Sequence record: NC_061449.1
Length of the DNA: 64,000 nucleotides
Direction: 5' to 3' (one strand)
The translations under genes and the position numbers were made by a program. This document shows, piece by piece, positions 13,233 to 55,402 of this stretch (positions are counted from its first letter, which is position 1; every line of letters begins with the position of its first letter). The notes under the pieces were generated by a model that worked only from the letters and a program-made list of their open reading frames with translations, had not been told where the DNA came from and searched no databases.

Positions 13233-13493
13233 ATGGTATACGAACGCGAAGAACTCGAAGACATGCCTCTTAGTACGCTTTATCATCTGGCGTGTGCCAA
13301 AGGTCTGTTAGATGACCTCGACGATGAAGACGACGTACCAGAACGTGAGGTGCTGGTGGGAATGATTCTCGACGCGCAGAGTGAAGATGAACAGGCAGAG
13401 CAAGACGCTGCCGATAAACAACGCGCCGAAGATGATCGCGACCCGCGTATCAATCGTCGTGAAGATCAAGACGGCTCGGACGACTACTGCTAA
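13233..13493 (+). CDS. Small acidic protein with Rho-N/HeH-like module
   Basis: GGAG RBS; ELEDMPLSTLYHLACAKGL...EREVLVGMIL. Confidence 0.7.
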   Translation: MVYEREELEDMPLSTLYHLACAKGLLDDLDDEDDVPEREVLVGMILDAQSEDEQAEQDAADKQRAEDDRDPRINRREDQDGSDDYC

Positions 13494-13711
13494 TGACACC
13501 TACTGAACTCAATGAGTATCTGCATCTGGTGCTGACGCCTGTTGCTATGGCATGGCGTGAACAGTTCCCCAAGAAAAAGCAGGTGATGGCCTAGGTCAAA
13601 ACAGCTTACTCATGTCGTATCAAATTCGTCGAAGACCGTGAAGTTGAAAAAGCGTGGCAAGCATTCTGTCGCACACACGGTCTCAAGAACGAAGAAACAC
13701 TCGAAGTCTAA
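13493..13711 (+). pseudogene. 72-codon reading frame interrupted by one in-frame TAG (13592-13594)
   Basis: TAATG coupling; MTPTELNEYLHLVLTPVAMAWREQFPKKKQVMA*VKTAYSCRIKFVEDREVEKAWQAFCRTHGLKNEETLEV; ends just before a terminator. Confidence 0.55.
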
Positions 13712-13715
13712 ACTC

Positions 13716-13745
13716 AAGGGCTGCCATTGCTGGTGGCCCTTTTTC
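13716..13745 (+). terminator. Intrinsic terminator
   Basis: AAGGGCTGCCA-TTGC-TGGTGGCCCTTTTT. Confidence 0.8.
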
Positions 13746-13790
13746 ATTTCTGTAAATATCACGCACACAAACAACAATGCGAGATATACA

Positions 13791-14159
13791 ATGCGCCGCT
13801 TCGTTATCGTCTTCAACGTCACTCAGGCAGAGCTTGAGGACCGTCGCTTCTTTCAGTCTAAATTCAACATCGTTTCGTCACTGCGCCGTGCTCGCTGTGT
13901 CTTTCTCGTTGTTCGTGAAACAAAGCAGGTGCTGTGCGTTTCAGAACTGACCTATCAACCAAGTGTAGAGCCAGGCATCCGTCAGGTAGACTTCGATGCA
14001 CCGCGTGATGTGACTGCATATGTGTTGCCATTCACCGAACTCACTACAGCTATGGTCAACAACTCACAGGACCCAAGCATTCGCTACTTCGGTCGCCAGC
14101 TTGAGATGGATGCAGACCAACTCAAGCGCTTCCACACTCAACTGGAGATTGTCTCATGA
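13791..14159 (+). CDS. Hypothetical protein (start moved to ATG 13791)
   Basis: The longer ORF start runs across the terminator; coupled to the next gene by ATGA. Confidence 0.6.
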   Translation: MRRFVIVFNVTQAELEDRRFFQSKFNIVSSLRRARCVFLVVRETKQVLCVSELTYQPSVEPGIRQVDFDAPRDVTAYVLPFTELTTAMVNNSQDPSIRYFGRQLEMDADQLKRFHTQLEIVS

Positions 14160-14401
14160 CCAAACCAACACTGGGCGCTTCACTGGGCGCTCGCTTCGCC
14201 GTCACCTCGAAAGAGAACATCGAGGCACGTAAGAAAACGAACCCACGTCGAAGCACGTTAAGCGCAGCAACAACCAGAGAATTGCACAACGCTGTGAACA
14301 TGCTGGCGATCAAACTCAAGACCACACGCTCTGGTGCTATTGAACGCGCAGTGGCGGAACTATGCGACAAGCATGGCATTGACTACGGGACGCTTGAATG
14401 A
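14156..14401 (+). CDS. Ribbon-helix-helix-like DNA-binding protein
   Basis: STLSAATTRELHNAVNMLAIKLKTTRSGAIERAV fits the CopG/RHH strand-helix-helix pattern. Confidence 0.5.
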   Translation: MTKPTLGASLGARFAVTSKENIEARKKTNPRRSTLSAATTRELHNAVNMLAIKLKTTRSGAIERAVAELCDKHGIDYGTLE

Positions 14402-14760
14402 CCGACACGCATATCTACTGCAAGCTGTATGGTGTGCGGCATCGCTTAAAGATCACCGCGTACAACTTCATGAAGCAGCCTAACATGATCACTGTCGATT
14501 CGTCTGACGTGCTCAAGATGATGCCTCTGATTGATGTTGGTGCTGCATACGACACTTACACGCCGTACAACGTGCTCAAAGCAGGACGCGCTGACTTCAA
14601 GATCCGCCTGATAGAAAAGACAGACGCGAACGTTTGGCGTTATGTGTTTGAGGATTATCGTGGGCAGATGTTCGAAACGTATTTAGTTCGGAGACACTAT
14701 GAAACGCCTCGGGATTGTAACGGTGTTGTCATTAAAGGACAAACAACCCAAATCATGTGA
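14398..14760 (+). CDS. Hypothetical protein
   Basis: ATGA coupling, 120 aa. Confidence 0.65.
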   Translation: MTDTHIYCKLYGVRHRLKITAYNFMKQPNMITVDSSDVLKMMPLIDVGAAYDTYTPYNVLKAGRADFKIRLIEKTDANVWRYVFEDYRGQMFETYLVRRHYETPRDCNGVVIKGQTTQIM

Positions 14761-15334
14761 TTTAGATATCACGCCTGTATCGAAAGACGAAGAATGGGGC
14801 TCGCTGAGTCCCTTTCACTTAGGTCCGTGTCGTACACCAGACGGCACGATGTTTCTCAACATGGAGAATCTGTGGCAGTACAGCAAGGTCTACGAAGAAC
14901 ACCTCATTAACTCGAATGACCTGTTCCATGGTGAGATCTCCTCAGATTGGTGGGCGTGGCATTTAAAAGGCAGCACAACAAAACAGGCGCATCGCTATCC
15001 TATGGGAAAAGGCCAAAAGGCTTTGTTCTCCAGATGGGGCGACTTGCGCCTTTCGTACATTCCCGCACGAAAACAAATCTATGTGCCGGAGTACACAAAG
15101 CTGGTGGTGCAGCAACCGAAGTTCAAGCGCCTGTTGAAAGAATATAAGAAAGGTGCTCACATAGTTTTACGCGACTATGACACCTACGATATTCAGAAAG
15201 CCTATCCTGAATCGCGTAGTCCTTGGCTTTCCGCCATTCAAAACGACAATGCAAAATTCGGACACGCGTTCGTTATCGCATTGGCCCTGTTATTCCACGA
15301 ACGACCACTCTGGTATAATCAATGGACAATCTAA
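14699..15334 (+). CDS. DUF6939-like (NADAR-related fold?) protein
   Basis: DITPVS..LSPF..GP..ENLWQYSKVY..ARKQIYVPEY pattern recalled from this family. Confidence 0.5.
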   Translation: MKRLGIVTVLSLKDKQPKSCDLDITPVSKDEEWGSLSPFHLGPCRTPDGTMFLNMENLWQYSKVYEEHLINSNDLFHGEISSDWWAWHLKGSTTKQAHRYPMGKGQKALFSRWGDLRLSYIPARKQIYVPEYTKLVVQQPKFKRLLKEYKKGAHIVLRDYDTYDIQKAYPESRSPWLSAIQNDNAKFGHAFVIALALLFHERPLWYNQWTI

Positions 15335-15639
15335 AGTATCTGGCCTGTATCGAACTGAGCACAAGGGAAGGTAATCTGAATCTGCCTATCTTGCCTAAAT
15401 GTGATATGCAGGCGTTTCTGCTTGATAGCCGTACTAAAACGAAAGTGCCTATCAAGCTCAATGCCACAAATGTGGTCAAAGTCTGCAACAAGACGTGCGG
15501 TAGCCTACAGTGGTTCGACTGCGTTAATCTGCTTATTTGGTCTTCTTTCGAGCCTGAAAGATTTACGATGTATATTGAGCGCGTACTCAAAACAGACGAG
15601 ACTACAGAAGCCCTGCAATCTGCTGAACTCTGCAAATAA
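15322..15639 (+). CDS. Hypothetical protein
   Basis: 105-aa ORF overlapping the previous stop. Confidence 0.55.
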   Translation: MDNLKYLACIELSTREGNLNLPILPKCDMQAFLLDSRTKTKVPIKLNATNVVKVCNKTCGSLQWFDCVNLLIWSSFEPERFTMYIERVLKTDETTEALQSAELCK

Positions 15640-15685
15640 CTGGCTAAAATAGCCGTTTCATTCAGAGACTGACCTATGTTATAAT
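15632..15685 (+). promoter_or_regulatory. Early-type promoter family copy 2
   Basis: GCA-AATAAC-TGGCTAAAAT ... TATGT-TATAAT. Confidence 0.8.
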
Positions 15686-15731
15686 AAACGTGAGCGCAGT
15701 GCTCATTACAACACAAGCTGAGGAGCTTATT

Positions 15732-16178
15732 ATGACTATTTCAATCGCTGATCTGAAAACGCCTGCTGACTTTACTGCTAAACTGACTTTCGGTCACATG
15801 GAAGAATTGAGGGCGAATCTCGAACGCGCCTTGAATCGTCCTGACCTTGAAGTGTATGTTGAGTGTGACTCAAACTATACCATCGAAGAAGCGAACACTG
15901 ACGGTCCTGACCAACTGGTTGCTGGTCATGATTACATAAACGTTCACGTTCGCTATTCAGGTATGTCATTCGACGAGACTACTGAGAAAGGTGTGTGGGA
16001 TATTCTGCTGCATACACCACATGAAGATAACGATGTGGGTGAATGGTCGAACTCGTACACAATGCTTATCATGGACGATAACATGGACCTTCTCGAAGAA
16101 GTGAACGTAGAAAATGGCAACCCGCGCATGTACGAAACTTTCGTAGATCGTCTGAACTACTGGTTACCTAAACTGTAA
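15732..16178 (+). CDS. Acidic hypothetical protein (start ATG 15732)
   Basis: AAGCTGAGGAGCTT RBS block. Confidence 0.75.
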   Translation: MTISIADLKTPADFTAKLTFGHMEELRANLERALNRPDLEVYVECDSNYTIEEANTDGPDQLVAGHDYINVHVRYSGMSFDETTEKGVWDILLHTPHEDNDVGEWSNSYTMLIMDDNMDLLEEVNVENGNPRMYETFVDRLNYWLPKL

Positions 16179-16180
16179 GT

Positions 16181-16249
16181 GATTTGTGTAGAGCATTCGC
16201 TGAGTGCTCTATGAAAATCCAAACAACCTAAGCTGAGGAGCTTAACATG
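16181..16249 (+). repeat. Intergenic cassette repeat A (hairpin + AAGCTGAGGAGCTTAACATG)
   Basis: GATTTGTG-TAGAGCATTCGCTGAGTGCTCTA-TGAAAATC...TAAGCTGAGGAGCTTAACATG. Confidence 0.85.
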
Positions 16250-16564
16250 TCATCATCTACTACTCTGACTTTCATCTTCCCAGAAATGACTACTCTGGAA
16301 GTTTCTATCGGTAACGGCATTGTTCCTGCGTATCTGGGTCTCGCCGAAAACAGAGACATAACATTCAGCGATGTTAAAGCGCTGCGTCTTATGGGTGACT
16401 CTAACATCGTGGGTGCAATGAGCCGCTTTGATCAGTCACTGCTTAACATGCTGATCGCTCGCCACGAAACGCATGAGCATATTCGTTGTCGTGACGCGAT
16501 TGAAAATGGCACTGAGCATTTCCCATCTACTTGTCTGTACCTGAAAGTAGCGCACCACCGCTAA
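16247..16564 (+). CDS. Hypothetical protein
   Basis: Starts at the cassette ATG. Confidence 0.75.
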   Translation: MSSSTTLTFIFPEMTTLEVSIGNGIVPAYLGLAENRDITFSDVKALRLMGDSNIVGAMSRFDQSLLNMLIARHETHEHIRCRDAIENGTEHFPSTCLYLKVAHHR

Positions 16565-16630
16565 GATTTGTGAAGGGCATTCGCTGAGTGCCCTTTGAAA
16601 ATCAAACCATAAGCTGAGGAGCTTAACATG
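16565..16630 (+). repeat. Intergenic cassette repeat B
   Basis: GATTTGTG-AAGGGCATTCGCTGAGTGCCCTT-TGAAAATC...TAAGCTGAGGAGCTTAACATG; compensatory stem changes relative to A. Confidence 0.85.
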
Positions 16631-16981
16631 CCAGCAACTGAACTGCCTATCGACGCCCGCGCTTTTGACGACCTGAGCAACAACGCTTTCTTGCAAGTAT
16701 GCAACGCGATCTCTTTCTGTGTATCGCGTGGTGATCTTGAGTTTCGTCATCACATTAAAGGCCGTCACATCGACGTTGCTTATCGTGCTGGTGGCAACAA
16801 CACATTCGGTATTAGCACTGTGCGTATACTGATGCCGTCCGAAGTTCTGCGTGAAGATATCGTAGAAGACTTCGAAATCATACACGGCGATGCAGTGATT
16901 CAGATTGAACGCCAGAAAGATTCGTTCTCAACGTTACAGCGTATCGCTGGTGCAGTCGAAGCGTGTATGCCTAAACGGTGA
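16628..16981 (+). CDS. Hypothetical protein
   Basis: Starts at the cassette ATG. Confidence 0.75.
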   Translation: MPATELPIDARAFDDLSNNAFLQVCNAISFCVSRGDLEFRHHIKGRHIDVAYRAGGNNTFGISTVRILMPSEVLREDIVEDFEIIHGDAVIQIERQKDSFSTLQRIAGAVEACMPKR

Positions 16982-29770: not shown

Positions 29771-30075
29771 TGGAAGGTAAAAAGCTAGACGTATTCCTGC
29801 AACAACGCACTGCAATAAATAAAGTCGCTTCCAGTCCAAAAGACTGGGAGACGTACAAAGAAATGCTGTTGAACATACGGCTTGCCGTTGCTGTTGACCC
29901 ACGCCCTGATGCCGCTGTGCGACACTTAGCACGTACTTGGCACGCCGAAAAGAAATATGCGCTCCCTGTCTGTCAGGCTACGCTTTTAAAACTGATGACG
30001 TTGAAGAAAGCGAACCAAACGCTTGAAGAAATGATCGCGCTCTACATTGACCTTGAGGAAGGACCGAAGAAATGA
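29770..30075 (+). CDS. Hypothetical protein (start ATG 29770)
   Basis: TGATG coupling. Confidence 0.65.
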   Translation: MEGKKLDVFLQQRTAINKVASSPKDWETYKEMLLNIRLAVAVDPRPDAAVRHLARTWHAEKKYALPVCQATLLKLMTLKKANQTLEEMIALYIDLEEGPKK

Positions 30076-31244
30076 ATGATATCACCAAAATTGCTCGCAG
30101 CATTTTTGAACGAGGCACTATCGAGCAACGTGATGCGTTACGTGCCGTTGCGAATACAGTGCTTGTTCCAAACATGCGACTTGCCTATGAAGTCGCTGAG
30201 CCTACAGTTGAAGAAACGTATCGCCTTCTTGAGGGCATTGCGTTTACAGGTGATGGTACGCTGATGCTGCCGGGTGACGAGATCTACGCACTCGATTCTC
30301 TCCTGAACAAAGAGTGGAAGAAGACTTTCTTCGAAGCTGTTGCGAACATGACGCTTACCATGTATTGCACAGACCCGCACACCGCGGGCAAAGGCTTCTG
30401 GCCTAAGAACAACAATGATTGTTGCGAGTTTATCACACGCGCCTTTATCTGGATGCTCACTCAGCACGGTCTGACCAATATTCTGTTGCGCGATACAAGC
30501 GTCGTAAGCCATACGCGTTTGCCTCAGTTTATCATTGCGTTGCAGACAGAAGGTAAAGACGATGGCTATGCGCGTCATTTCAGTTTGTATGATCCGTATT
30601 CTGATTCAGGCAACATCACTGTTTCTAACTTGTGGTCGGACGAATACAAAGCAGCAAGAGTGAGTGAGACTCTTGCTAGTCGTCCACCTGAATACGATGC
30701 GGTTCGTCGTATGAAGTTCGATGAACTCGCTGACTTGTGCGAGCGACTGGAACTCATTGCAGTGAAGTCCGACTCGAACTGCGATTGTGAAGATGATGAC
30801 TGCGAATGCGGTGAGCTGGTAACTCGCCATGACCTCGACCGCGACCCAGACGATCTGCGTGAAATCTTCTACGCCAAGTATGGCGACCCTGACGACGAAG
30901 GCGTTGTCGATGAAGAAGCCTGGATTACAGGCGCTTCACTCATGGAAGTTGAAATCAATCTGCCGATCGTCACTTTGCATAAGCCTGTACCTAAAACGAA
31001 TATGCCGCAATCTGGCCGCATGAAAACGAAAAAGCCGATGGCGAAATCGACTAACAAGAGTCGTGTCGTTCTTCGTCCAGACCAACAGATCTGGCATGAG
31101 CTTGATGAAAAGCAAGAGTTCGGTGATCGTCGTTTTGCTATCACTCTCGTATCTCGCCATACGTGTGGTATCAATCGACCTGTAGCAACGAACAATGAAG
31201 CGCTCGCTATCGCATACGCCCTGTTAGCGCTAGAAAGCAAATAA
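30072..31244 (+). CDS. Hypothetical protein with HeH-like module and a CDCEDDDCEC loop
   Basis: 390 aa, ATGA coupling. Confidence 0.75.
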   Translation: MNDITKIARSIFERGTIEQRDALRAVANTVLVPNMRLAYEVAEPTVEETYRLLEGIAFTGDGTLMLPGDEIYALDSLLNKEWKKTFFEAVANMTLTMYCTDPHTAGKGFWPKNNNDCCEFITRAFIWMLTQHGLTNILLRDTSVVSHTRLPQFIIALQTEGKDDGYARHFSLYDPYSDSGNITVSNLWSDEYKAARVSETLASRPPEYDAVRRMKFDELADLCERLELIAVKSDSNCDCEDDDCECGELVTRHDLDRDPDDLREIFYAKYGDPDDEGVVDEEAWITGASLMEVEINLPIVTLHKPVPKTNMPQSGRMKTKKPMAKSTNKSRVVLRPDQQIWHELDEKQEFGDRRFAITLVSRHTCGINRPVATNNEALAIAYALLALESK

Positions 31245-37222: not shown

Positions 37223-37269
37223 TCTATCAATCGAGGCAGCGCTCACGGGTGCTGCACAGGAGAAACATT

Positions 37270-38808
37270 ATGTCATTCGATCTTCGTCAAAACTTACTGC
37301 TTGTTCGTGACGCTGCCTTGACAGGCAAGCCGCTGTTTTATTTCTACAACGCCATGGGACGTGAGATGGTTCTTACTGGCGATGTGCTGCGTGAAATCAT
37401 TGAGCGCCAGAAAGAAGGTACGCTCTGCACTAACACTTACTGGGGTTTCGCGTCTGACCCTACGCTAGAGGTTTGGTCGTTCGACGATAACAATGACCTA
37501 ATGCTTCACCATCACGTAGGCAAGTCCTGCAAAACGTTCCTGCCGTATGAGATGCTTGAGAGTGCTCACGAAGGCTTCAAGCCCATCAATGGTCTGTTCA
37601 TCGAAGACAGTCTGCGCCGCATAATCAAGATTCATCTCAAGGCAACATGCCGTGAGGAACAAAAGATCACTTGGTTTGCCGATCTACCTGAGTCCGAAAT
37701 GCGTAGCATGTTGTTATCTCTCGGTGTGGGTCCGATGCGTGTGTCGCGGGAAGACAAAGAAGGTCTGGTCAAGCTGCATGGCCGTTGGCTGGAAGACTTC
37801 GATGATAAGTACAAGTACACGCATAACGCAATCGGCTTGGACGACAACGAAAAAATTCCTGCTGACTATCGCCCTGACCGCATTCGTGACATTACGAAGC
37901 GTATGATGGCTAATGGCAAAACTCAGGATATGATGGACCAAACTCTGAATGACTTGTTGCGTCAGTGTCGTATTCGCGGCGATATCCCGCATCCGGGCCG
38001 TAACTTCAATCGCCATCAATTGACTTGCTACTACGCAACGCATTTGATCTTTGCGCACGACGCGAAAGAGAAAATGTCAGAACTGATTGATAATCCGCAA
38101 TTCGTGGTCAACTTCATTTATGGCTGGTACCCGGAATATACGTGGATTACGATCAACGAAGAAACGTTCGAGTATCAGCAGTCGCTGGTACGTGCCGCGC
38201 TGATCAGTCTGCAACGTCATGTGCAGAATGAAGTTGATGTATACAAGATCGATCATGGCATGGTTAAGTTTGCAGACAACTTCGAACCAAAAACAAACGA
38301 AAAGCCAGAAGATGATGGTGATCTTGATCTGGATAAACTGGACAGAGATGGTCTGTTAGAGCTGGTCATCCAGTATAAGCTGGCCTCAGCAAAGAAAGCC
38401 GCATCACTCGATATTTCTGAGTTACGTGAGCTTTGTGAAGACCATTTCGGGTATGATGAAGTTGAAGAGGACGAGCCAGAACAGGAGCGTGAGCCTCGTA
38501 AATTCCCAGCCGTCAGCGATGACCGTAATATCAGCTACGAAGCGATTCGTAAGGTTCTGATGAAAGCTAAAGTTCCTCGCGCTACCTACGCAGGCGACCT
38601 GTACTCAAACAACCGAGCAACTGTAAGCAAAGTACGTAAGAGCATAATCAGTGCTCTGACAAATGCAGTTGAAGAGGGTATGCTGAATAAACTGCCTCAA
38701 ATCTCATTAGAGGCTATTGCATACGCTCTGACAAAAATGAAAGACGGTGATCGCTATCCGCGTGACGCTGAGTACCTGAAAGAACTAATTAAACACGCAC
38801 TGCGTTAA
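37270..38808 (+). CDS. Hypothetical protein carrying the shared ~45-aa helical module
   Basis: AGGAG RBS; LDLDKLDRDGLLELVIQYKLASAKKAASLDISELRELCEDHFG at 38323-38454. Confidence 0.8.
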   Translation: MSFDLRQNLLLVRDAALTGKPLFYFYNAMGREMVLTGDVLREIIERQKEGTLCTNTYWGFASDPTLEVWSFDDNNDLMLHHHVGKSCKTFLPYEMLESAHEGFKPINGLFIEDSLRRIIKIHLKATCREEQKITWFADLPESEMRSMLLSLGVGPMRVSREDKEGLVKLHGRWLEDFDDKYKYTHNAIGLDDNEKIPADYRPDRIRDITKRMMANGKTQDMMDQTLNDLLRQCRIRGDIPHPGRNFNRHQLTCYYATHLIFAHDAKEKMSELIDNPQFVVNFIYGWYPEYTWITINEETFEYQQSLVRAALISLQRHVQNEVDVYKIDHGMVKFADNFEPKTNEKPEDDGDLDLDKLDRDGLLELVIQYKLASAKKAASLDISELRELCEDHFGYDEVEEDEPEQEREPRKFPAVSDDRNISYEAIRKVLMKAKVPRATYAGDLYSNNRATVSKVRKSIISALTNAVEEGMLNKLPQISLEAIAYALTKMKDGDRYPRDAEYLKELIKHALR

Positions 38809-40752: not shown

Positions 40753-40964
40753 GCCGACGACCAACGCAAGATGAAGTGAACGGTCAGATAGCTGCGTCCG
40801 AAGAGCAACGCTATAACGAACAAATCGCTCAATATGACGACTGGACAGACGACGAGCTGGCAGATGCTGTAGAAGCTAATGAGCTTGTACGCGAAGATGA
40901 AGACGCAAGCGACTACAGCCGCGAAGCGCTGATTCGTATGCTGCTGGCTGATAGACGCTTCTAA
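40749..40964 (+). CDS. Small acidic protein with Rho-N/HeH-like module
   Basis: YDDWTDDELADAVEANEL...YSREALIRMLL. Confidence 0.7.
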   Translation: MSRRPTQDEVNGQIAASEEQRYNEQIAQYDDWTDDELADAVEANELVREDEDASDYSREALIRMLLADRRF

Positions 40965-41220: not shown

Positions 41221-41940
41221 ATGCCTACTACTTCACGCCCTAAAACAGAAGACAAATTCTCTCAGGCTCGTGCTGCTAAGAACTCTCCAGAGCGTCAGGC
41301 CGCCGCCGAAAAGAAACGTCACAAGGAAACTCCGCCGAAATCAGTACAGGCGAAGTTAGATGCCGTAGCTGCTTCTAAAAAGAAGACGCCGCGTGGTCCG
41401 TCTTCTGTTAGGCCAAAAGCCAGTGCCCCGACTCCTTCTTTCAAGGAACACCTTGCTAAGAAGCGAGTGCGCGATGAAGAACGCGTGTTCAATTTGGTTC
41501 ATGCAATTCTTTCTGCGTGGAAAGCAGATGTGGGTCACGCTGAACACACTGCCGCTTCTGCGGGCATCATCAAAGTGTCGCGTCGTAAGATTGAAGGCGC
41601 CCTGCGTGACCTCAAGAATACGCGCTTCACTAAGATCCCGACGCTCATTAATGACGTCCTCGTGTATAACGAAGTCTGCAATGAGTTTGGTCAGTGGGTA
41701 TACGTCGAGCATGATAGTCCTGATTGGATTTTCGTGCGTCTGCCTGAAAACAGCACACCTGTGATTCGTGCTGATATCAGCTACGACAAGACAGGGGAAA
41801 CACCTGCCTCTATTTCGACTTCAAGCGAAGCTCTGCTGGCCGACTTCGACGAAGAAGAGGAAGACGAGATTCCTGAGAACGTCGAATATGATGACGAGAA
41901 TGATTCCGATCTTGCCGAAGAAGAAGAGGAGGAAGAATAA
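41221..41940 (+). CDS. Hypothetical protein with basic N-terminus and acidic C-terminus
   Basis: AAGGA RBS. Confidence 0.75.
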   Translation: MPTTSRPKTEDKFSQARAAKNSPERQAAAEKKRHKETPPKSVQAKLDAVAASKKKTPRGPSSVRPKASAPTPSFKEHLAKKRVRDEERVFNLVHAILSAWKADVGHAEHTAASAGIIKVSRRKIEGALRDLKNTRFTKIPTLINDVLVYNEVCNEFGQWVYVEHDSPDWIFVRLPENSTPVIRADISYDKTGETPASISTSSEALLADFDEEEEDEIPENVEYDDENDSDLAEEEEEEE

Positions 41941-42389
41941 TGGCCTCTTCAATTCGTCCGGCATCCGAAACTGCTGCAATGATCATTGAAAACGTCACGC
42001 TCTATTCTCAAGAGAAGGGGCATGATTATACGCTGCCGCGCTTTAAAATGTCAGACGCAGCAATACGCCGCATTTCAGGGCATACGCGCTTGCTGCCTGA
42101 AAGCTATATCGAACAGCTCACCGTCGAGCTACAACAACTTGACTGGTTAATCGTTCGATATGAAGCAGGCATGTTTGTCTTCATGTCGTATGCAGTGGCA
42201 AAGAACTGGACGACTTTGAGCGCAAAGCGTGTTGTGCCAAACGACGACCTAAACGCTGAGTACGATACGTGGACGTTGCCTGAGCTACAGGGATTCGCTC
42301 AACGTAACGACTTCTTACAGCCCGACGAAGAGGGGTTTCACGATAGAGCGTCAGTGATTCGCGCTATCATGCGAGGCGAGACTCACTAA
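41940..42389 (+). CDS. Hypothetical protein with C-terminal Rho-N/HeH-like module
   Basis: TAATG coupling; YDTWTLPELQGFAQRNDF...HDRASVIRAIM. Confidence 0.7.
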   Translation: MASSIRPASETAAMIIENVTLYSQEKGHDYTLPRFKMSDAAIRRISGHTRLLPESYIEQLTVELQQLDWLIVRYEAGMFVFMSYAVAKNWTTLSAKRVVPNDDLNAEYDTWTLPELQGFAQRNDFLQPDEEGFHDRASVIRAIMRGETH

Positions 42390-42549: not shown

Positions 42550-44166
42550 ATGGCACGTATCGAAACTAACACTAACCTGGTTGGCAAAACTATCGTCCTG
42601 CTGAACGGCACCAAAACTAAAATCGAAGATGCAATCGCATCCGGCTACAAAGTGAAAGGCCAGACGAAACGTATCGCTACCCGTTGCGTTGTGAAAGATG
42701 GTGCGCACTTCCGTGAAATCGAACGTATGAACATGAGCCAGCTGGAAGATACAGGCGAAGGTTATGTTAAGCTGAAAGATGCGAAAGCGTCTGGCAAGAA
42801 AGCGACCGGCAAGAAAGACGCTGTGAAAGAGAAAGCGCCTAAGACTTCTGGTAAGAAGACTGGCGGCAAAGTCTCGAAAGAGAAAGAGCCGAAAGTTCGT
42901 CGCAAAACAAAAGTTAGTGGAGGCGAAGACGAGCTGGACTTCAATGATTTTTCAGCAACCGCTGTTGCTGGCTCTATCATCAAAGGCGGCAAGGCGAAAC
43001 CTGCTGTTGAAATCGAGGCTGTAGACGAAACGCTGACCGATACTGTAGCCAAACGTCTGGTGGCGCTGATTGAAAACAGCGAAATTGCGAAAGTGTGCGC
43101 TGACAACAAAACGCCGATCGCTAACGCGCTGTCAGTTGCTTACGGTGCTGAGTACGCCGAAGAGAACAACACAATGCAGATCACGCTGAGCCTGCAATAT
43201 GCGATGCCTGTCAAAGATACCGCTGTTGCGCCTGAGCTTGATGAAGCTGTTGCGAAACGTGCCTCCAAACTTGCTGCTAAGAAGATTGGCAAAGTGCTGG
43301 CGAAAGCAATCAAAGCTGCGTTTGATCTCGAAGATGCAAACGACCTGCTGCCCGGTACTGTACTGACCACTGACGGTGCTGAGTTCGTGTTTGTGGGTGA
43401 ATCTGCTAAACACGCCGGCAAAGCGCTGATGTATAGCGCAGACACTGACGGCTTCAAATCATTCGGCGCCGACAAGCTGTCCGACTTCGAAATCGTCGCT
43501 GAGGAAAGCGAAGAAGTCGAAGAAGAAGAGGAAGAAGAGGAAGAAGAAGTCGAAGAAGTCGAAGAAGAAGAGGAAGACGGCGAAGACGACGACAACGTAG
43601 AAGATGACGGCGAGCCACAAGACGCCGAATACGAGTTCGTTGCTGTCGAAGCTGATCAACTCGAACTGGTCAACAAGAAAGTGACCGCGAAGTATCACGC
43701 TGCACTTGCCGAACGTTTCGGCGTAGACGAAGAAGCGCTCGCCCCTGGCCTGATGTTGACTGACGGCGAAACAACCTTCGCTTATCTGGGCTGCGATAGC
43801 AAAGGCGGGCTGTTGGTAATCGACCTGTCTGACGACGCAGACGAAGAAGATAACGTTCTGGTCTATAGTAAAGCGGATATCAAAACGCTGAACGACTTTA
43901 GCCCTGTGATCGATAGCGGTGAAGCTGACGACGCCGAAGAAGACACCGAAGAAGAAAACGACACCGAAGAAGAAAACGACTTCGAAGATGAAGACGGTGA
44001 AGAAGACGAAGACGAAGAAGACTTCGAATTTGACGACGCACCGAGCGAAGACCTCGAAGATCTGTCCGAAGACGAGCTGCGTGATCGCGCTGTTGAAGCC
44101 GGTCTGACTACGCCGCGTAAAGCAGACAAAATGAATGCTGCCCAGCTGCGTAAGCTCCTGAAGTAA
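42550..44166 (+). CDS. Large acidic multidomain protein, paralogue of 44243..45655
   Basis: GAGGAG RBS; shared N-terminal domain, two LxPG..F.(F/Y)(V/L)G domains, D/E tracts, C-terminal helical module. Confidence 0.85.
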   Translation: MARIETNTNLVGKTIVLLNGTKTKIEDAIASGYKVKGQTKRIATRCVVKDGAHFREIERMNMSQLEDTGEGYVKLKDAKASGKKATGKKDAVKEKAPKTSGKKTGGKVSKEKEPKVRRKTKVSGGEDELDFNDFSATAVAGSIIKGGKAKPAVEIEAVDETLTDTVAKRLVALIENSEIAKVCADNKTPIANALSVAYGAEYAEENNTMQITLSLQYAMPVKDTAVAPELDEAVAKRASKLAAKKIGKVLAKAIKAAFDLEDANDLLPGTVLTTDGAEFVFVGESAKHAGKALMYSADTDGFKSFGADKLSDFEIVAEESEEVEEEEEEEEEEVEEVEEEEEDGEDDDNVEDDGEPQDAEYEFVAVEADQLELVNKKVTAKYHAALAERFGVDEEALAPGLMLTDGETTFAYLGCDSKGGLLVIDLSDDADEEDNVLVYSKADIKTLNDFSPVIDSGEADDAEEDTEEENDTEEENDFEDEDGEEDEDEEDFEFDDAPSEDLEDLSEDELRDRAVEAGLTTPRKADKMNAAQLRKLLK

Positions 44167-47789: not shown

Positions 47790-50700
47790 ATGTCTAATAA
47801 TAATCTGGGCGCTGCTGCATCATTTGGTTCTGAAACACAAAAGCAGATTAGCGACGAGCAACGTCGTGCTCACTCTGCTGAGAGCGGTCATCTGAACAAA
47901 TGCACCATCGTTGTTCTGACTTCTCTGAACGCTCACGGTCGCTTCTCTTACATGAGCGCTGACGAGCAACTGCACGAGAAGTCGATTGAAGGTAAGGTAA
48001 TGGATCGACTGCCTAGCCTGATCGAACGTGCAACTGGTCCTTCTACAGACCAGAACAGTGCGTATTACATTCTGCATCCAAACAATGGTGTGCCTACTCG
48101 CATCGACGAGCGCATCAAAGTTGGTGAAGGTGATGCGGTCATTGTTTCGTATACTGTAAATAAAGCGGTGTCAGAGATGCACGGTAGTTTGTCGCTCGCT
48201 CTTTTCAGCGCAGGCGAAAGCGACCTGTCAGACTTGGCAGCCGAGTTTGGGGTTCACTCTATCTCGATTGTCGAAGAAAGCAAAGCCGGTAATTACATTC
48301 AGGCACTCGCCGCTCAGGTGGAAGCTCTGCAAACTGTAAATATCACAAGCATTGATGAAACTGATGGTGCTCTCGATAAAGCGGTAATTGATTACAGCGC
48401 GTTGCCAGCTAACCCTGTTACTGTGCTGTCTGGTGCTGTGCGTACTTTCATCATGCAAACTATTGGCGGCGAGATCGTTGCTGCAATTCCAAATAACGGA
48501 GAACTGAACGTGAAACAACCTACCAACGCAACGCCTGTAAACCTGAGCGAAGACTTCGACGCAGAAGACGAAGTTGTTGATCAGCATGAAGGCGGCGACG
48601 AAGAAGAAGTTGCTACTGGCACTGACCTGTTCGGCTACAAAGCAGAAACGCTGTCTGTTGAGCAAATGACCGAAGCGCTCGAAGCGATTGGTTATGATCT
48701 GACTGCGATGAACGAAGACGGTATTCGTGAATCGTTCGACACTGAGCAGGCCATCTGGCTGGAAAAAGCTGACAGCGCCGAAGTAGACGGCGAAGACGAC
48801 GATGCCGAAGACGAAGAAGAAGACGAAGAAGAAACCGAAGACGGTGACTTCGATGCCGTTCAATTCCTCGCTTCTGTGCTGGTCGCCGAAGAACTGGATC
48901 GTGCCGGTCTGAAAGTTCTGATTCGTACTCAAGACCTTCCGGTGATGAAGAAAGACACCGTTGAAACTCTGACTGCGAAGCTGCTTGAGCTGGTCGAAGG
49001 CGCAACCGAAGAAGAGATGGTTGAACTGCTGAACACATTCGTAGGCGCTCTGCAAGAGCATGAAATCGCCTGCCCGAACATGCTGGCGGCTCTGTCTTCT
49101 GACGAAGACGAAGACGAAGACGAAGACGAAGACGAAGACGAAGACGAAGAAGATTCTGAGGAGGAAGAAGACTCCGAAGATGATGAAGACGAAGACGAAG
49201 AAGATTCTGAGGAGGAAGAAGACTCCGAAGATGATGACGGTGATGACCTGCAGGAGCAGATTGACGCCGTAACTGATCCTCTCGACTACTTCCAGTTTAC
49301 CGGCGGTGCCCTGACTGCTGAACAACGTGCTGCTGCCGTTGCTGCTATGGGTGAAGACGCATCTGCGATGACTATCGTTCAGGTAATGAAAGCGTTTACT
49401 CGCATTCAAAGCCAGACCAGCCCTATCGCTGCTGACGATGAAGCTGACCTTTCGTCTAACGTTGACGAACTGACTGCGCTGCTTGGTCAGTACGATGAAG
49501 CGACCGTTCAGCACGTAGCTGAAAGCCTGGGCATTCTCGTTGACGAATGCGAAACCGCTGACGAAATGATCGAAGCGATTGCTAACGGCGGTAACGAAGA
49601 CGACTTCGCCGCAGTTGAAGAGATCGCAACTAACTACGGTGTTGACCTGTCCGAAGTTGCTGACGGCCGTGAGCTGAACTTTGTTGACGCTCTGCTTGCC
49701 GTGCTGCCAGCGTTCCTGAACGACGACGAAGTTTCCGACGACGAAGACGAAGACGAAGACGCCGATGAAGCAGGCGACGATGAAGTTGAAAGCGAAGACG
49801 AAGATGAAGTAGAAGCTGAGGGCGATGCCCCTGCTGAAAACGATCATCTGAAATTCGTTAAGTCTGTTGATACCACAAATCGCGTTGGCCCTATGCTGAC
49901 TGTCGATATGGACCAGACTCTGATCATCAACTTCACGCTGACTGACGGTGATACTTACTCGCCGATTGAAAGCGAACTGTCTGACATTAACGGCTTCAAC
50001 TACCGCTATCCGTTCAATCTGGGTAAAGCTGGTAAAGCGCCGGGCGCGATGCACCTGCCAGCGCAGTCTCTGCTGGACATCATCGAACGTACCAGCACTA
50101 CTCGCTTCATGGCTGACCCATCAACGTTCGATGTTGCTGCGTGGTCTGAGAGTCTCGAAGCGACTCTGGAAGATGAAATCGCATCATCTCTGTATGCTGG
50201 TCGCATCGAAGATGGTATGGACCCGAACGAAGCTGGTCTTGTCGTCGGTGAGTTCATCGACGAAGAAGAAATCGCACAAGCCACTGAGCTGGGATACATC
50301 GACGAAGATCAGTTTGCAGAACTGCAGGGCGACCATCTGCCGATTGCAAGCCTGTACAGTGCTAAGTCTCGCGTCCGTCCTGTGCAGGTTGATACTGCCC
50401 ACGTCGCGCTGCACACCACTGTGATGAACGTTGCAGTCCCTGGCTTCTGGGGTGACTCTGATGTTTCTCTGCTGGTGCAAGCTGCTGTTAACCGCGTTAT
50501 CGCTCTGGCTGGTACCGTTGAAGGTATCAAAGTGTACGCTGGCTTCACGTTCGAGTCTGCTGCACTGCTGAACAACGACCGTCTGTTTGAAGCGCTGACC
50601 GCACTGCGCACCATGGAAGGCGTACAGTCTTACTCTGCTGCTGACGCTGCGAACTTCGACGACGCAGAAGACGTGATCGAAGTAGCTGGTGCTCTCGATG

Positions 50701-50840
50701 CTCGCGACCTGCCGCTGTCTATCCTGTCTGGCGGTCTGGCTGCTGCAACGTTCGATAACGGCGGTGACCTGACTGTTCTTGTTCAGTGTTCTCCTGAGGA
50801 AGAAGAATCCGAAGAAGAAGACGAAGGCGAAGACGAATAA
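47790..50840 (+). CDS. Giant (1016 aa) hyper-acidic protein with several HeH-like modules
   Basis: GAGGAG RBS; D/E tracts; EELDRAGLKVLIRTQDLPVMKKDTVETLTAKLL. Confidence 0.85.
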   Translation: MSNNNLGAAASFGSETQKQISDEQRRAHSAESGHLNKCTIVVLTSLNAHGRFSYMSADEQLHEKSIEGKVMDRLPSLIERATGPSTDQNSAYYILHPNNGVPTRIDERIKVGEGDAVIVSYTVNKAVSEMHGSLSLALFSAGESDLSDLAAEFGVHSISIVEESKAGNYIQALAAQVEALQTVNITSIDETDGALDKAVIDYSALPANPVTVLSGAVRTFIMQTIGGEIVAAIPNNGELNVKQPTNATPVNLSEDFDAEDEVVDQHEGGDEEEVATGTDLFGYKAETLSVEQMTEALEAIGYDLTAMNEDGIRESFDTEQAIWLEKADSAEVDGEDDDAEDEEEDEEETEDGDFDAVQFLASVLVAEELDRAGLKVLIRTQDLPVMKKDTVETLTAKLLELVEGATEEEMVELLNTFVGALQEHEIACPNMLAALSSDEDEDEDEDEDEDEDEEDSEEEEDSEDDEDEDEEDSEEEEDSEDDDGDDLQEQIDAVTDPLDYFQFTGGALTAEQRAAAVAAMGEDASAMTIVQVMKAFTRIQSQTSPIAADDEADLSSNVDELTALLGQYDEATVQHVAESLGILVDECETADEMIEAIANGGNEDDFAAVEEIATNYGVDLSEVADGRELNFVDALLAVLPAFLNDDEVSDDEDEDEDADEAGDDEVESEDEDEVEAEGDAPAENDHLKFVKSVDTTNRVGPMLTVDMDQTLIINFTLTDGDTYSPIESELSDINGFNYRYPFNLGKAGKAPGAMHLPAQSLLDIIERTSTTRFMADPSTFDVAAWSESLEATLEDEIASSLYAGRIEDGMDPNEAGLVVGEFIDEEEIAQATELGYIDEDQFAELQGDHLPIASLYSAKSRVRPVQVDTAHVALHTTVMNVAVPGFWGDSDVSLLVQAAVNRVIALAGTVEGIKVYAGFTFESAALLNNDRLFEALTALRTMEGVQSYSAADAANFDDAEDVIEVAGALDARDLPLSILSGGLAAATFDNGGDLTVLVQCSPEEEESEEEDEGEDE
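49101..49237 (+). repeat. (GACGAA)8 microsatellite plus 51-bp-period tandem duplication in CDS
   Basis: GACGAA x8 at 49101-49148; 50 identical nt at 49137-49186 and 49188-49237. Confidence 0.9.
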
Positions 50841-51763: not shown

Positions 51764-51820
51764 CTAATTGAAGTTCGAACCGAGCAACAAGCTCACACTT
51801 ATAAATCCCGGAGCATTACA

Positions 51821-52375
51821 ATGGCTAAAGTAACTAAAGGCACTTCACTGGCACCTACCCTGGCATCTCGCATTGCTAAAAAATCTGGTTCCATCAGCAC
51901 CTCTAAAGTGAAGCCTGCTGACCTGCCGCACGACATTCTGATTGAAACAGTTCAGGCTGTTGAGCTGATTGGTTTCATTACTGATCGTACTGAAAACAGC
52001 GTTACCATTCGTCACAAACGTGGTCACGGTTCTTCTGCTCAGATCGTTTCTACTTTCGGTCCTAACCAAATCCTGTCTGTGCTGGGCGAAGCCGGTTCTC
52101 ACGGTAGCGTAATCGCAAACATCAGCGCTCCGGTGCGTGAGTACAAAGGCTTCACCGTTAAGTTCGTTGGCAACTTCATCCACGCGACCTCTGTTGAAAC
52201 TGGCGAAGTGGTTCATATCAACACCGCGCTGCCTGGCTACAACGTTCGCCCGACTGTGAACGAAACTGCTGCTGCTAAAAAGTACGGTACTGCCGCGCCT
52301 GCGAAAGCGAAGAAAGCTGATAAAGCTGATAAAGGCGGTAAGCCAGCTAAACTGGTTAAGAAAGCAAAAAAGTAA
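51821..52375 (+). CDS. Basic protein with beta-rich core and Lys/Ala tail
   Basis: GGAG RBS; highly expressed-type codons. Confidence 0.8.
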   Translation: MAKVTKGTSLAPTLASRIAKKSGSISTSKVKPADLPHDILIETVQAVELIGFITDRTENSVTIRHKRGHGSSAQIVSTFGPNQILSVLGEAGSHGSVIANISAPVREYKGFTVKFVGNFIHATSVETGEVVHINTALPGYNVRPTVNETAAAKKYGTAAPAKAKKADKADKGGKPAKLVKKAKK

Positions 52376-52411
52376 TAAAGTCTGACGAAGACTTTTAACT
52401 GAACTTTCGAA

Positions 52412-52479
52412 ATCTGTAAACATTAAGTATGCAGTGAGATAAAATGTTCTCACTGCCTGTCTCTTGAAATCTGTAAATC
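52412..52479 (+). promoter_or_regulatory. Tandem WCTGTAAAY motifs
   Basis: ATCTGTAAACA (52412) and ATCTGTAAATC (52469). Confidence 0.5.
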
Positions 52480-52524
52480 TTAATTGAAGCAACATCGCTT
52501 CTACTCAAACAGGAAAAACAAATC

Positions 52525-53349
52525 ATGGCTAAAGCTGCTAAAGCAACCGTTAACACCGCATCTCTGGTTCTGGCAAAAATGCTTGGTGTTGTAGTAGAAA
52601 ACGCGACCGATAAAGAAATCGCTGCGCTGCTCGCATCTGCCGGTCTGACCGTGTCTGGTGGCAAAGTTGTTAAAGCTGACAAAGGCGGTAAAGCTGCTAA
52701 AGGCAAAAAGGCAAAAGCACCTACCGTTGCTGAAATCGTCGCTGCTGTGAAAGACGAAGAAGAACTGGACATTTCCGGCGTTGACGAAGACACTCTGCGT
52801 GAAGCAGTTGTCAAAGCCAAGCTGGCTAATAAAAAGAAAGCAGGTGCGCTGGACGAAGACGAACTGCGCGAACTGCTGAACGACAACCTGGGTGGCGAGT
52901 CCGATGAGGACGAAGACGAAGAAGAAGAAGAAGAGGACGACGAAGACGAGGACGAAGAGTCCGACGACGAAGACGAAGACGGCGACGACGACGAAGACGA
53001 AGACGACGACTCTGATGATGAAGAAGAGGACGACGAAGACGACGAAGACGGCGACGACGACGAAGACGACGAAGACGGCGACGACGAAGATGAAGATGAA
53101 GACGACGAAGATGAAGACGAGGATGAAGATGAAGATCTCGACCTCGATTCACTCGACGAAGACGAACTTCGCGCCCTGGTAATCGAACACAAGCTGGCCG
53201 CCGCCAAGAAAGCGAAAAAGATGGACGAAGATGAACTGCGCGAACTCTGCGAAGAACACTTCGGCGGCGAAGACGACGAAGACGACGAAGACGAAGATGA
53301 AGACGACGAAGACTTCGACGACGAAGACGAAGACGAAGACGACGAGTAA
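52525..53349 (+). CDS. Hyper-acidic protein with two copies of the shared helical module
   Basis: AGGA RBS; modules at 52765-52896 and 53137-53268 flanking a near-pure D/E tract. Confidence 0.85.
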   Translation: MAKAAKATVNTASLVLAKMLGVVVENATDKEIAALLASAGLTVSGGKVVKADKGGKAAKGKKAKAPTVAEIVAAVKDEEELDISGVDEDTLREAVVKAKLANKKKAGALDEDELRELLNDNLGGESDEDEDEEEEEEDDEDEDEESDDEDEDGDDDEDEDDDSDDEEEDDEDDEDGDDDEDDEDGDDEDEDEDDEDEDEDEDEDLDLDSLDEDELRALVIEHKLAAAKKAKKMDEDELRELCEEHFGGEDDEDDEDEDEDDEDFDDEDEDEDDE

Positions 53350-53366
53350 TATCTTCTGACCGGCGC

Positions 53367-53398
53367 GCCCCTCTAGTTCTGACGAATGAGCGAGGGGC
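53367..53398 (+). terminator. Hairpin after the acidic gene
   Basis: GCCCCTC...GAGGGGC. Confidence 0.45.
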
Positions 53399-53400
53399 AA

Positions 53401-53479
53401 ATATTCGAGAAAACTTTTCGAATATTTTTTGTAAAAAGTTTCAAAATTTCTTGCAGACGTATGTTGAATATAATAATGT
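53401..53479 (+). promoter_or_regulatory. Canonical sigma70-type promoter with upstream palindrome
   Basis: TTGCAG (53451)-17 nt-TAATGT (53474); ATATTCGA-GAAAACTTT-TCGAATAT at 53401-53425. Confidence 0.5.
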
Positions 53480-53566
53480 ACGTCTACAGGAAATCAAACC
53501 CTGAACAAATTTATCTTTTCATCCAGCGGTGAAAACGCCGCATCAAATATAAAGTAAGGATATCAC

Positions 53567-54091
53567 ATGAGCAAGAAAATCATCAGCGGCCTGAACAAAG
53601 AAATCAAAGCCCTGGACAAATCTGAAAAAGCGCTGGTTAAAACTGCTGCCGGTCTGACCAAAGAAGCCGAAGCGATTGCTGCACGCCGCGAAGGCCTGGC
53701 TGCTCAGGTTGAAGCTCTGGCTAGCGGCGGTGAAGCTGCTCCAGCTAAAGGCAAAGCTAAAGCAGAGAAAGCTGCTAAGCCTGCTAAAGCAGAGAAAAAA
53801 GCAAAAGCTGAAAAGCCTGCTAAAGCTGAAAAAGCTGGCAAGAAAGCAAAAGCTGAAAAGCCTGCTAAAGCTGAAAAAGCAGACAAAAAAGCAAAAGCTG
53901 AAAAGCCTGCTAAAGCAGACAAAAAAGCAAAGGCTGAAAAGCCAGCCAAAGCTGATAAAAAAGCTAAAGCTGAAAAAGCCGCTAAGCCTGCTAAAGCAGA
54001 CAAAGCCGCCAAGAAAGTGAAAGGCGACAAGAAAGCCAAAGCTGGCAAGCAGAAGAAAGAGTCCGAAGACTTCGACTTCGAAATGGAATAA
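53567..54091 (+). CDS. Histone H1-like (AlgP/Hc2-type) protein: coiled-coil N-terminus, KAEKPAKA repeats, acidic-aromatic tail
   Basis: AAGGA RBS; repeated KA(E/D)KPAKA units; ends ESEDFDFEME. Confidence 0.8.
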   Translation: MSKKIISGLNKEIKALDKSEKALVKTAAGLTKEAEAIAARREGLAAQVEALASGGEAAPAKGKAKAEKAAKPAKAEKKAKAEKPAKAEKAGKKAKAEKPAKAEKADKKAKAEKPAKADKKAKAEKPAKADKKAKAEKAAKPAKADKAAKKVKGDKKAKAGKQKKESEDFDFEME

Positions 54092-54124
54092 GCAAGTAAT
54101 CGCGCACTAGCGGTCACTTGATCG

Positions 54125-54157
54125 AAAGGGCAGCGCTGACGAGCGTTTGCCCTTTTG
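54125..54157 (+). terminator. Intrinsic terminator
   Basis: AAAGGGCAGCGCT-GACG-AGCGTTTGCCCTTTT. Confidence 0.75.
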
Positions 54158-54189
54158 TCATATCTACACGACTTTTTGAGGTATTCCCT

Positions 54190-54684
54190 ATGTCTGCCGA
54201 ACATCTGCTTAACGACGACCTCCCCGACGATACTCGCCCGCTCAAACCCGCTCTCGAATCTGCTAAACCTACCTACTACGACTTGATGACGCTACGCTTA
54301 GAAGCTGGTGCTCGTCTTGCTCGTGCTATCAAAACATTGCGTGATGCTAACGTTCTCCCTACATCAGGTAGTGGTGCTACACTTCTAACTACTGCTCTTG
54401 AAGTAGCGGAACGTCACTTCGCTGATATCTGCATGGGACTCGTACCTGTTCGTGAAGGTACTGATGTATGCACAATCAAGATGCGTGAAGACCTCCCTGC
54501 CTGTGTCGAAGCGTTTCGTATTGTCGTAATGGAACATGCTCAACGTGAAGCACTGGAGCGTGAGTGTCGAAACATGATCGACCACGTAGGCGGCTTTAAG
54601 ATTCTCACTCAGCCTCAAGTGCTGCATGTCGAAAACAAACACGTCTGCAATGGGGATTGCGATCATGACTCAGAAACTGTCTGA
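54190..54684 (+). CDS. Hypothetical protein (start ATG 54190)
   Basis: GAGGT RBS. Confidence 0.7.
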   Translation: MSAEHLLNDDLPDDTRPLKPALESAKPTYYDLMTLRLEAGARLARAIKTLRDANVLPTSGSGATLLTTALEVAERHFADICMGLVPVREGTDVCTIKMREDLPACVEAFRIVVMEHAQREALERECRNMIDHVGGFKILTQPQVLHVENKHVCNGDCDHDSETV

Positions 54685-55402
54685 ACAAATCAACCGCTAT
54701 TTTAATCTCATGGAAAAAATCCGTGAGCAAATGTACCGCGTCCTGCCTGTTAGTGACCGTTACTTGTGTGTCGTAAGTTTCAGCACACAACTCCAGGCAC
54801 TCCAGTGCGTACTGGTAAGCAAAGCATCTTTGATGGAAGCAAAGCTGATTGAAGGTCTGACTGGTCAGGAGCTGGTGACGTATGGCCAGTATCTGCAAAC
54901 TGCCGAAGAGTGGGTTGCTAATGGTATGCAAGATGATTATCCGTTCACTCAGGATAAAGATGTGTATGCCGAGTACCGCAGCCTGACGCGTGACGAATCC
55001 CAGCCTGTGCTTGAAATGGATGACGAAGATCTCGACATACAGGAGCTGGATAATCTGCGCACCTCAATTCTTTGTGCAGACAAAGCCACTCTGGTGCAGA
55101 TGTACGTAGATGAAAATCTCGGTACAAAAGGCAAAGCCGCTGACATGGATGCGGATCAATTGCAGGAAGCTCTGTGTGAGCACTACGGCCTTAACCCTGA
55201 TGTTCCTGTCAGACTCGTCGATGTTGTTGGCGAAATGGTTAAACGCTTCGAAAGCCTTCCTAACCATGACGCCCTCAAAGAAGTTGACCTCCTGACAAAG
55301 GAAGAACTGCTTAGTCTTGCAGGCGCGTGGGGTATTGAAAAGACTGCACACGAGCACACTATGCGCTCTCTTATCAAGGGCTATCTGCTGCGCCGTACAT
55401 AA
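54665..55402 (+). CDS. Hypothetical protein with the shared helical module and a second HeH-like unit
   Basis: ADKATLVQMYVDENLGTKGKAADMDADQLQEALCEHYG (55061-55192). Confidence 0.75.
   Translation: MTQKLSEQINRYFNLMEKIREQMYRVLPVSDRYLCVVSFSTQLQALQCVLVSKASLMEAKLIEGLTGQELVTYGQYLQTAEEWVANGMQDDYPFTQDKDVYAEYRSLTRDESQPVLEMDDEDLDIQELDNLRTSILCADKATLVQMYVDENLGTKGKAADMDADQLQEALCEHYGLNPDVPVRLVDVVGEMVKRFESLPNHDALKEVDLLTKEELLSLAGAWGIEKTAHEHTMRSLIKGYLLRRT

Follow-up and report, generated by a model that had tools for sequence, protein, structure and literature searches.

A recurrent acidic module resembling helix-extension-helix domains in four unrelated proteins of Erwinia jumbo phage pEa_SNUABM_17, with a possible role in protein docking

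Introduction

The helix-extension-helix fold is a known fold and a common add-on to phage proteins. Many Rho_N (PF07498), SAP (PF02037), and HeH/LEM (PF03020, PF12949) domains bind nucleic acid, and SAP domains are basic DNA binders; the LEM domain, by contrast, binds BAF and provides a precedent for this fold as a protein-docking unit. Partner recruitment on DNA-replication proteins is also known from the flexible, acidic C-terminal tails of single-stranded DNA-binding proteins (SSBs), such as the tip of Escherichia coli SSB, T4 gp32, and T7 gp2.5. DUF669 proteins are SSBs that partner an AAA recombinase, and their acidic and flexible C-terminal region likewise serves partner recruitment (PMC13687109). 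The system described here, the type-1 module, is a unit of approximately 43 residues that occurs five times in four proteins—gp302, gp311, gp319, and gp322—of Erwinia jumbo phage pEa_SNUABM_17 (NC_061449.1, genus Alexandravirus; genome 263,916 bp). This phage has been placed in the PaBG/Lu11/Y3/AD1 group of jumbo myoviruses (PMC7412058). The stretch analyzed, called the window throughout, comprises the final 64 kb of the genome; window positions equal record positions minus 199,916, and all genes of the window lie on the + strand.

Compared with the described systems, the type-1 sequence family is new: It is absent from Pfam and NCBIfam, and PHROGs include it solely as part of whole-protein families to which no function is assigned. 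Further novelties are how strongly acidic it is, the poly-acidic linkers that constantly accompany it, and its occurrence on several proteins within a single phage clade. The reading favored here, held tentatively, is that of a protein-docking adaptor carried on flexible charged linkers at sites of replication and recombination.

The type-1 module and its carriers

A first-pass annotation of the window had proposed a helical module in at least nine unrelated proteins, with close copies at 52765, 53137, 38323, 44047, and 55061. The peptides of all five close copies are indeed encoded in frame, on the + strand, at these places; for the last one, the peptide itself spans 55076–55189, and 55061 lies five codons upstream in the same frame. 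Two copies reside in gp319 (52525..53349, from the annotation and an orthologue alignment): copy 1 at 52765..52896 (residues 81–124; 59.3 bits) and copy 2 at 53137..53268 (residues 205–248; 73.5 bits), the latter being nearest to the family consensus. The copy of gp302 (annotated at 37270..38808) occupies 38323..38454 (57.3 bits), which corresponds to residues 359–402 of the open reading frame (ORF) that begins at 37249. In gp311 (annotated at 42550..44166), the module forms the extreme C-terminus at 44047..44163 (51.6 bits), and gp322 (annotated at 54665..55402), encoded immediately upstream of the topoisomerase II genes, carries the most divergent copy at 55061..55192 (57.5 bits). The scores refer to a hidden Markov model (HMM) of 41 sequences, made up of the five window copies and 36 copies from elsewhere.

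Since the score of a seed against an HMM built from itself is trivial, a leave-two-out test was used. An HMM seeded with the three best copies recovered the copies at 55076 and 44047 with 17.4 and 16.5 bits, respectively, compared with 5.5 bits as the highest score from 20 shuffled proteomes. In hhalign comparisons with all 84 window proteins, the five copies score 57–86, the rest at most 18.3, and reversed sequences up to 17.0. The whole-genome HMM scan that the first-pass annotation had called for was run with the 41-sequence HMM over six frames of the entire 264-kb genome and returned just the five close copies, at 51–73 bits, and none of the looser ones; no sixth copy was found in the genome, the runner-up being gp308 with 7.3 bits against a shuffled maximum of 7.7 bits. 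All five copies combine a significant HMM score with the fixed 43-residue layout, the hydrophobic core, and the basic connector. Between copies, third codon positions are 25–48% identical and first and second positions 41–77%; the third positions have diverged while positions one and two are conserved, and hence the copies are old and have been maintained by peptide-level selection. Because the third positions are saturated, an origin of the copies by recent duplication inside the genome or by gene conversion was rejected. The type-1 family is, in sum, genuine and under selection.

The carriers are unrelated, as had been claimed: Once the modules are masked, no mutual similarity is left (best E 0.83). 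Searches of the carriers against Pfam, NCBIfam, and PHROGs gave matches solely to PHROGs of unknown function—phrog_30618 for gp319 and phrog_33433 for gp311—and gp302 has no relative in Pfam, NCBIfam, or the PDB. Neither Rho_RNA_bind nor any further Pfam domain is present in the carriers.

Both helices of the module open with an acidic, D-E-D-E-L-like cap. These helix-start caps belong to the most conserved positions, together with the hydrophobic residues L11, L20, A26, L35, and L38 and the K-K-A-K-K connector. The median net charge is −6 (range −12 to +1), composed of approximately +3 from the connector and approximately −9 from the helices. The module lies almost always within or beside poly-D/E and K-rich linkers, and the claimed adjacency to acidic tracts holds, with a D/E fraction of 0.2–0.96 in the 30-residue flanks compared with 0.15 in the window proteome. 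In gp319, a helical N-terminus is followed by a K-rich stretch, the first module, an 80-residue poly-D/E tract (52897–53136), the second module, and an acidic tail, and gp311 carries K-rich and poly-D/E blocks, too; charge-blockiness is weak in gp302 and gp322. Among carriers from other phages, 12 of 21 contain a poly-D/E block and 12 of 21 a K/R-rich block, compared with 3 and 8, respectively, of the 80 other window proteins.

Two further features of the carriers can be appreciated. The last 13 residues of gp319 (window 53308–53346) read E-D-F-D-D-E-D-E-D-E-D-D-E, and the Phe residue is found in eight of nine aligned family members (Glu in P0003), reminiscent of the aromatic residue that SSB-type tails carry in their acidic tips. 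In gp311, residues ~265–315 and ~395–450 are alike by eye (L-x-P-G-x-[VM]-L-[ST]-x-D-G ... F-x-[FY]-[VL]-G), and a poly-acidic tract comes after each of them; a small domain may have been duplicated within the protein.

Predicted fold and comparison with known families

The type-1 module was modeled by AlphaFold2 (AF2) from 27 sequences with gp319 copy 2 (53137) as the target and reached a mean predicted local distance difference test (pLDDT) score of 85.7. The model features a helix at residues 11–20 (10 residues), a 13-residue connector, and a second helix at residues 34–45 (12 residues), with a helical turn at 26–31 within the basic connector. In BFVD, a library of predicted viral structures, the module's own family comes first, followed by named neighbors that are mostly Rho N-terminal (ranks 11, 12, 13, 24, 30, 36, 44, and 48), SAP (rank 37), and HeH/LEM (rank 46) domains. 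These matches have a TMq of 0.56–0.70 and a root-mean-square deviation of 1.3–2 Å, but each is weak by itself (E 0.8–5).

The Pfam search for Rho_N returned no match, whether the queries were the nine whole proteins (E up to 1) or sets of 5 and 27 isolated modules (E up to 10). For SAP, the best single module (1 of 27) has an E of 0.0058, and the two-module protein P0016 reaches 20.5 bits, below the threshold of 23.9 bits. One module each of the 27 resembles Ish1 (E 0.02–0.03; 15 bits compared with a cut-off of 26.6) and LEM (E 0.17), in both cases below threshold. Effector-associated domain 7 (EAD7, PF19960) is approached by 6 of 27 modules with an E of 0.009 or worse (16 bits; threshold 32 bits), and these matches are confined to the D-E-D-E-L-R-E-L stretch. 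Neither the 5- and 27-sequence profiles nor gp311, gp302, and P0004 retrieved anything relevant in sequence searches of the PDB. The likeness to Rho N-terminal, LEM, and SAP domains noted in the first-pass annotation is borne out at the level of the fold by modest evidence—the AF2 model and the BFVD neighbors—but not at the level of Pfam sequence thresholds. Type 1 is a new and rare sequence family whose predicted fold is a known one, outside the Rho_N, SAP, and LEM families of Pfam.

Among the closest known families is Rho_N, which resembles the predicted arrangement of helix, extended connector, and helix over ~40 residues, is the commonest named neighbor (8 of the top 50 in BFVD; matches weak), and is, as is the type-1 module, a frequent add-on to phage proteins. 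The type-1 module differs from Rho_N by lacking a Pfam Rho_N match and an adjacent Rho RNA-binding domain and by being strongly acidic and embedded in poly-D/E tracts. With SAP it has in common the spacing of hydrophobic residues and a conserved connector, basic or glycine-containing; SAP-annotated phage proteins occur among the fold neighbors of both module types, and faint Pfam matches exist below threshold, whereas the net charge of approximately −6 sets type 1 apart. LEM/HeH and Ish1 have the helix-extension-helix fold predicted for type 1, HeH/LEM-annotated phage proteins are found among the fold neighbors, and faint matches to Ish1 and LEM occur. However, LEM/HeH and Ish1 families are eukaryotic nuclear-envelope proteins, and none has a significant sequence match to the type-1 module.

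The type-2 module and the looser copies

Five looser copies had been claimed in addition, at 13233, 30072, 40749, 41940, and 47790, and their scores by both the type-1 HMM and hhalign lie inside the null range. At two of these places, gp308 (40749) and gp310 (41940), the protein ends in a module of a separate family, type 2, with 74–91 bits to a type-2 HMM and the pattern Y-x-x-W-T-L ... D-R-x-x-[LV]-I. The gp310 module spans 42255..42386 on the + strand (90.8 bits) and the gp308 module 40827..40961, also + (74.2 bits; its 7.3 bits to the type-1 HMM are within the shuffled range). The type-2 HMM found no copy in the genome besides these two, and elsewhere the family was found only in close relatives. 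Its AF2 model (4 sequences; pLDDT 85.2) features a helix at 14–23, a 13-residue connector, and a helix at 37–49, the same spacing as in type 1; the BFVD list is weaker and of the same kind (SAP rank 14; Rho ranks 32, 35, and 44; HeH/LEM rank 50), and five targets are common to both top-50 lists. The connector of type 2 is acidic, and the basic patch is absent. For both module types, a helix-extension-helix fold is moderately supported by the predicted models. An hhalign comparison of the two types gives a P of 0.004 with 12% of residues identical, at best a hint of common ancestry.

The remaining three looser copies, all on the + strand, are unsupported. gp254 (13233..13493) scores 11.7 in the type-1 hhalign comparison (null up to 17.0) and 3.5 bits with the type-2 HMM. 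gp291 (30072..31244; hhalign 14.6, P 0.07 over 14 columns) contains a half-motif only, D-P-D-D-L-R-E-I, resembling helix 2 of type 1. gp316 (47790..50840), judged by a 17-sequence orthologue alignment, gives P values of 0.064 (type 1) and 0.094 (type 2). The latter protein has 1016 residues, is kept across the clade, and consists of long poly-D/E tracts between short helical segments; no family has been assigned to it, and neither module profile matches it. The claimed count of at least nine proteins does not stand, type 1 amounting to five copies in four proteins with gp319 carrying two; the defensible count is type 1 in four proteins and type 2 in two.

In SNUABM_7 and Yoloswag, the type-2 module forms the C-terminus of the gp309 orthologue instead of that of gp310 (loci L010 9119–9940 and L007 8996–9709). 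In pEa_SNUABM_17 (gp309 and gp310 together at window 41221–42389), gp309 ends in an acidic tract directly before the start of gp310. The domain, being on gp310 here and on the gp309 orthologue in two relatives, has hence moved between adjacent genes. In pEa_SNUABM_33 (L021 9361–9495), a gp308-type type-2 module occupies residues 103–147 of a 147-residue open frame, compared with 71 residues for gp308; this suggests a fusion with the upstream gene or a different start relative to it.

Occurrence in other phages, gain, and loss

A profile of the five copies was compared with 1.84 billion representative proteins and gave 24 matches at E ≤0.001, of which 21 are left after removal of three unrelated helix-turn-helix (HTH)-repeat proteins. 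The latter, P0017, P0019, and P0023, contain repeated HTH-like units (L-R-x-L-Y-[VI]-E-x-x-L-[ST] ... E-I-A ...) that match the first half of the type-1 profile (E 5e-6 to 5e-4). They are treated as false positives; a distant relation of such repeats to helix 1 and the connector may nevertheless exist. Besides orthologues of the four carriers, the 21 representatives comprise several foreign architectures, including small acidic proteins with two modules, P0021, P0008, and P0018. P0021 is a DUF669 protein (E 2.6e-13) plus one module, P0008 has four modules, and P0018 has two. In the IMG/VR contig L028, a DUF669 protein contains a type-1 module in its charged tail and is encoded in a cassette with dCMP deaminase, PolA, a PD-(D/E)XK nuclease, an AAA_24 ATPase, and an SNF2 helicase. 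The gene of P0008 follows AAA_24, the same position as that of the DUF669 gene of L028, and the gene of P0018 is a neighbor of one gene that matches a PHROG of DNA polymerase processivity factors and of another for a clamp-loader-like AAA+ protein. The module had been called lineage specific; its spread over several proteins is confined to the Y3/Alexandra/AD1 clade, but the module itself also occurs in unrelated phages, in DUF669 SSB tails and beside clamp and clamp-loader genes.

The likeness to SSB tails lies in this placement—inside such tails in L028, P0008, and P0021—and in the acidic gp319 tail with its one conserved Phe. The differences are that SSB tails act by a short linear motif, whereas the type-1 module is a predicted folded mini-domain that is often repeated, and that the type-1 carriers of pEa_SNUABM_17 are not SSBs.

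Among four divergent relatives, the gp319 orthologues retain both modules and the gp311 orthologues the C-terminal one. The Y3 orthologue of gp302 lacks both the module and its acidic flank, which are degenerate in the SNUABM_7 orthologue, and the module-bearing C-terminal extension of gp322 is missing in the Yoloswag and Yersinia orthologues. P0001 has three copies where gp319 has two, and P0006 has an additional internal copy. With copies gained, lost, and multiplied among orthologues, the type-1 module behaves as a mobile domain. The Y3 orthologue of gp322 (L009 22122–22901) contains, upstream of a divergent type-1 module, an extra insert of ~55 residues that by eye resembles another helix-connector-helix unit.

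A tblastn search with the two-module protein P0020 gave no match, the query probably being masked by the low-complexity filter. Assignment of the N-terminal domain of P0004 as gp32-like was unsupported by Pfam, PHROGs, the PDB, or comparison with gp242, and assignment of a 171-residue ORF of L028 as a VRR-NUC nuclease was dropped for want of a Pfam match. In the literature on HeH, Rho_N, and SAP domains in phages and on virion proteomics of the clade, nothing was found on these proteins.

Possible roles of the modules

A docking role is tentatively favored because of the acidity of the type-1 module, its flexible charged tethers, its place in SSB-type tails, and its tandem arrays. The type-1 domain has been added to, lost from, and multiplied in otherwise unrelated proteins of the early/replication region in the Y3/Alexandra/AD1 jumbo-phage clade. 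Held out on a flexible charged tether, it would act as a protein–protein docking unit and contact its partner via the basic connector and exposed helix faces, at sites of phage DNA replication or recombination, in a recruitment comparable to that by the C-terminal tails of SSB proteins. Tandem copies would give added avidity, and type 2, having the same layout with an acidic connector, would bind a different partner. What favors docking over DNA binding is the net charge of −6, the poly-acidic flanks, and the arrays of one to four copies. The earlier idea of a docking tag directed to one hub is plausible in view of the strong acidity, the position within SSB-type tails, and the tandem repetition. 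Several observations weigh against this reading. The known roles of the fold are mostly in nucleic-acid binding, which the basic connector and the replication context would fit as well. Each single structural match of the type-1 model to an HeH-type entry of BFVD is weak (E 0.8–5), and no Pfam model of the HeH clan is reached, with faint SAP, Ish1, or LEM matches in just 3 of 27 modules. A Foldseek search of the type-1 model against the PDB gave no HeH entry and nothing significant (best E ~4), as is expected since the unit has only ~40 residues. In the readable parts of the foreign contigs, a single protein carries the module, as one to four copies in tandem, and such a single carrier per contig does not fit a general scheme of many cargos and one hub.

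Ranked as the main rival is a SAP-like nucleic-acid binder, in which the K-K-A-K-K connector and the start of helix 2 would touch DNA or RNA and the carriers would be anchored on phage DNA, with the poly-acidic tracts being auto-inhibitory or competing DNA mimics. The Rho_N, SAP, and HeH/LEM fold neighbors, the basic connector as the most conserved polar feature, the location of carriers in replication regions and on SSB proteins, and the approach of P0016 to the Pfam SAP cut-off are in line with it. Such binding is nevertheless judged rather unlikely: The net charge of approximately −6, which ranges from −12 to +1 with helices at approximately −9, and flanks of up to 96% D/E speak against it, type 2 has the same layout without any basic patch, and ssDNA binding is already supplied by the OB fold of DUF669 proteins (PMC13687109). 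Multivalency could also be the function itself, with modules acting as stickers that bind one another or oppositely charged blocks on other carriers and, together with the poly-D/E and poly-K linkers, drive a condensate or scaffold at replication sites without a single defined partner. The arrays of one to four copies, the enrichment of both kinds of charged block in foreign carriers, and the alternating poly-D and poly-K blocks in the tail of the SSB gp242 would agree with this; it is purely inferential, and the weak charge-blockiness of gp302 and gp322 counts against it. It appears improbable. That the family is a compositional artefact of convergent amphipathic helices, with no homologous folded domain, is very unlikely and close to negligible. 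The sequence is indeed rich in D, E, K, and L amid low complexity, much of the module is masked by the BLAST low-complexity filter, and 3 of 24 database matches are the HTH-repeat proteins. However, L11, L20, A26, L35, and L38 are invariant or nearly so at fixed spacing without insertions or deletions, the scores are well beyond the shuffled and reversed nulls (51–73 bits compared with 7.7; hhalign 57–86 compared with 17.0), saturation at third codon positions goes along with a conserved protein, and the AF2 model is confident. The docking reading can finally be extended to a code, a speculative proposal with a low chance of being right: Types 1 and 2, together with the poly-D/E and poly-K linkers of the carriers and of gp242, might assemble unrelated proteins into one replication/recombination body—a hub or a condensate held by multivalent module–partner contacts—in a clade that does not form a phage nucleus.

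Other genes of the window

Nearly all genes of the window are annotated as hypothetical; those with names include a sigma factor, an SSB, a UvsX-like recombinase, and the topoisomerase II subunits. The C-terminal tail of the annotated SSB, gp242 (residues ~268–420; window 1575–2033), is a charge-blocky polyampholyte of long alternating poly-D and poly-K blocks and contains no HeH module. Similar tails of K and D blocks are seen in the foreign carrier P0018 and in the DUF669 protein of L028. gp243 (window 2094–5669; 1191 residues), annotated as "UvsX-like recombinase," is of RecA type (Pfam RecA, E 1.9e-16) and is split by an intein (Intein_splicing, residues 315–656; window ~3036–4061).

Implications

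The recurring module provides a handle on at least four jumbo-phage proteins without assigned function—six with type 2—and its company in other phages ties the carriers to replication and recombination. If it is a docking unit, its partner would reveal how these phages gather proteins at replicating DNA, and a folded, repeatable element would be added to the short linear motifs known on SSB tails. A docking code of a replication body, if true, would represent a mode of organizing phage replication that has not been described. Should the module prove to bind DNA in spite of its charge, the SAP-like fold would gain an unusual, acidic member. Either way, the type-1 family is definable as a new family.

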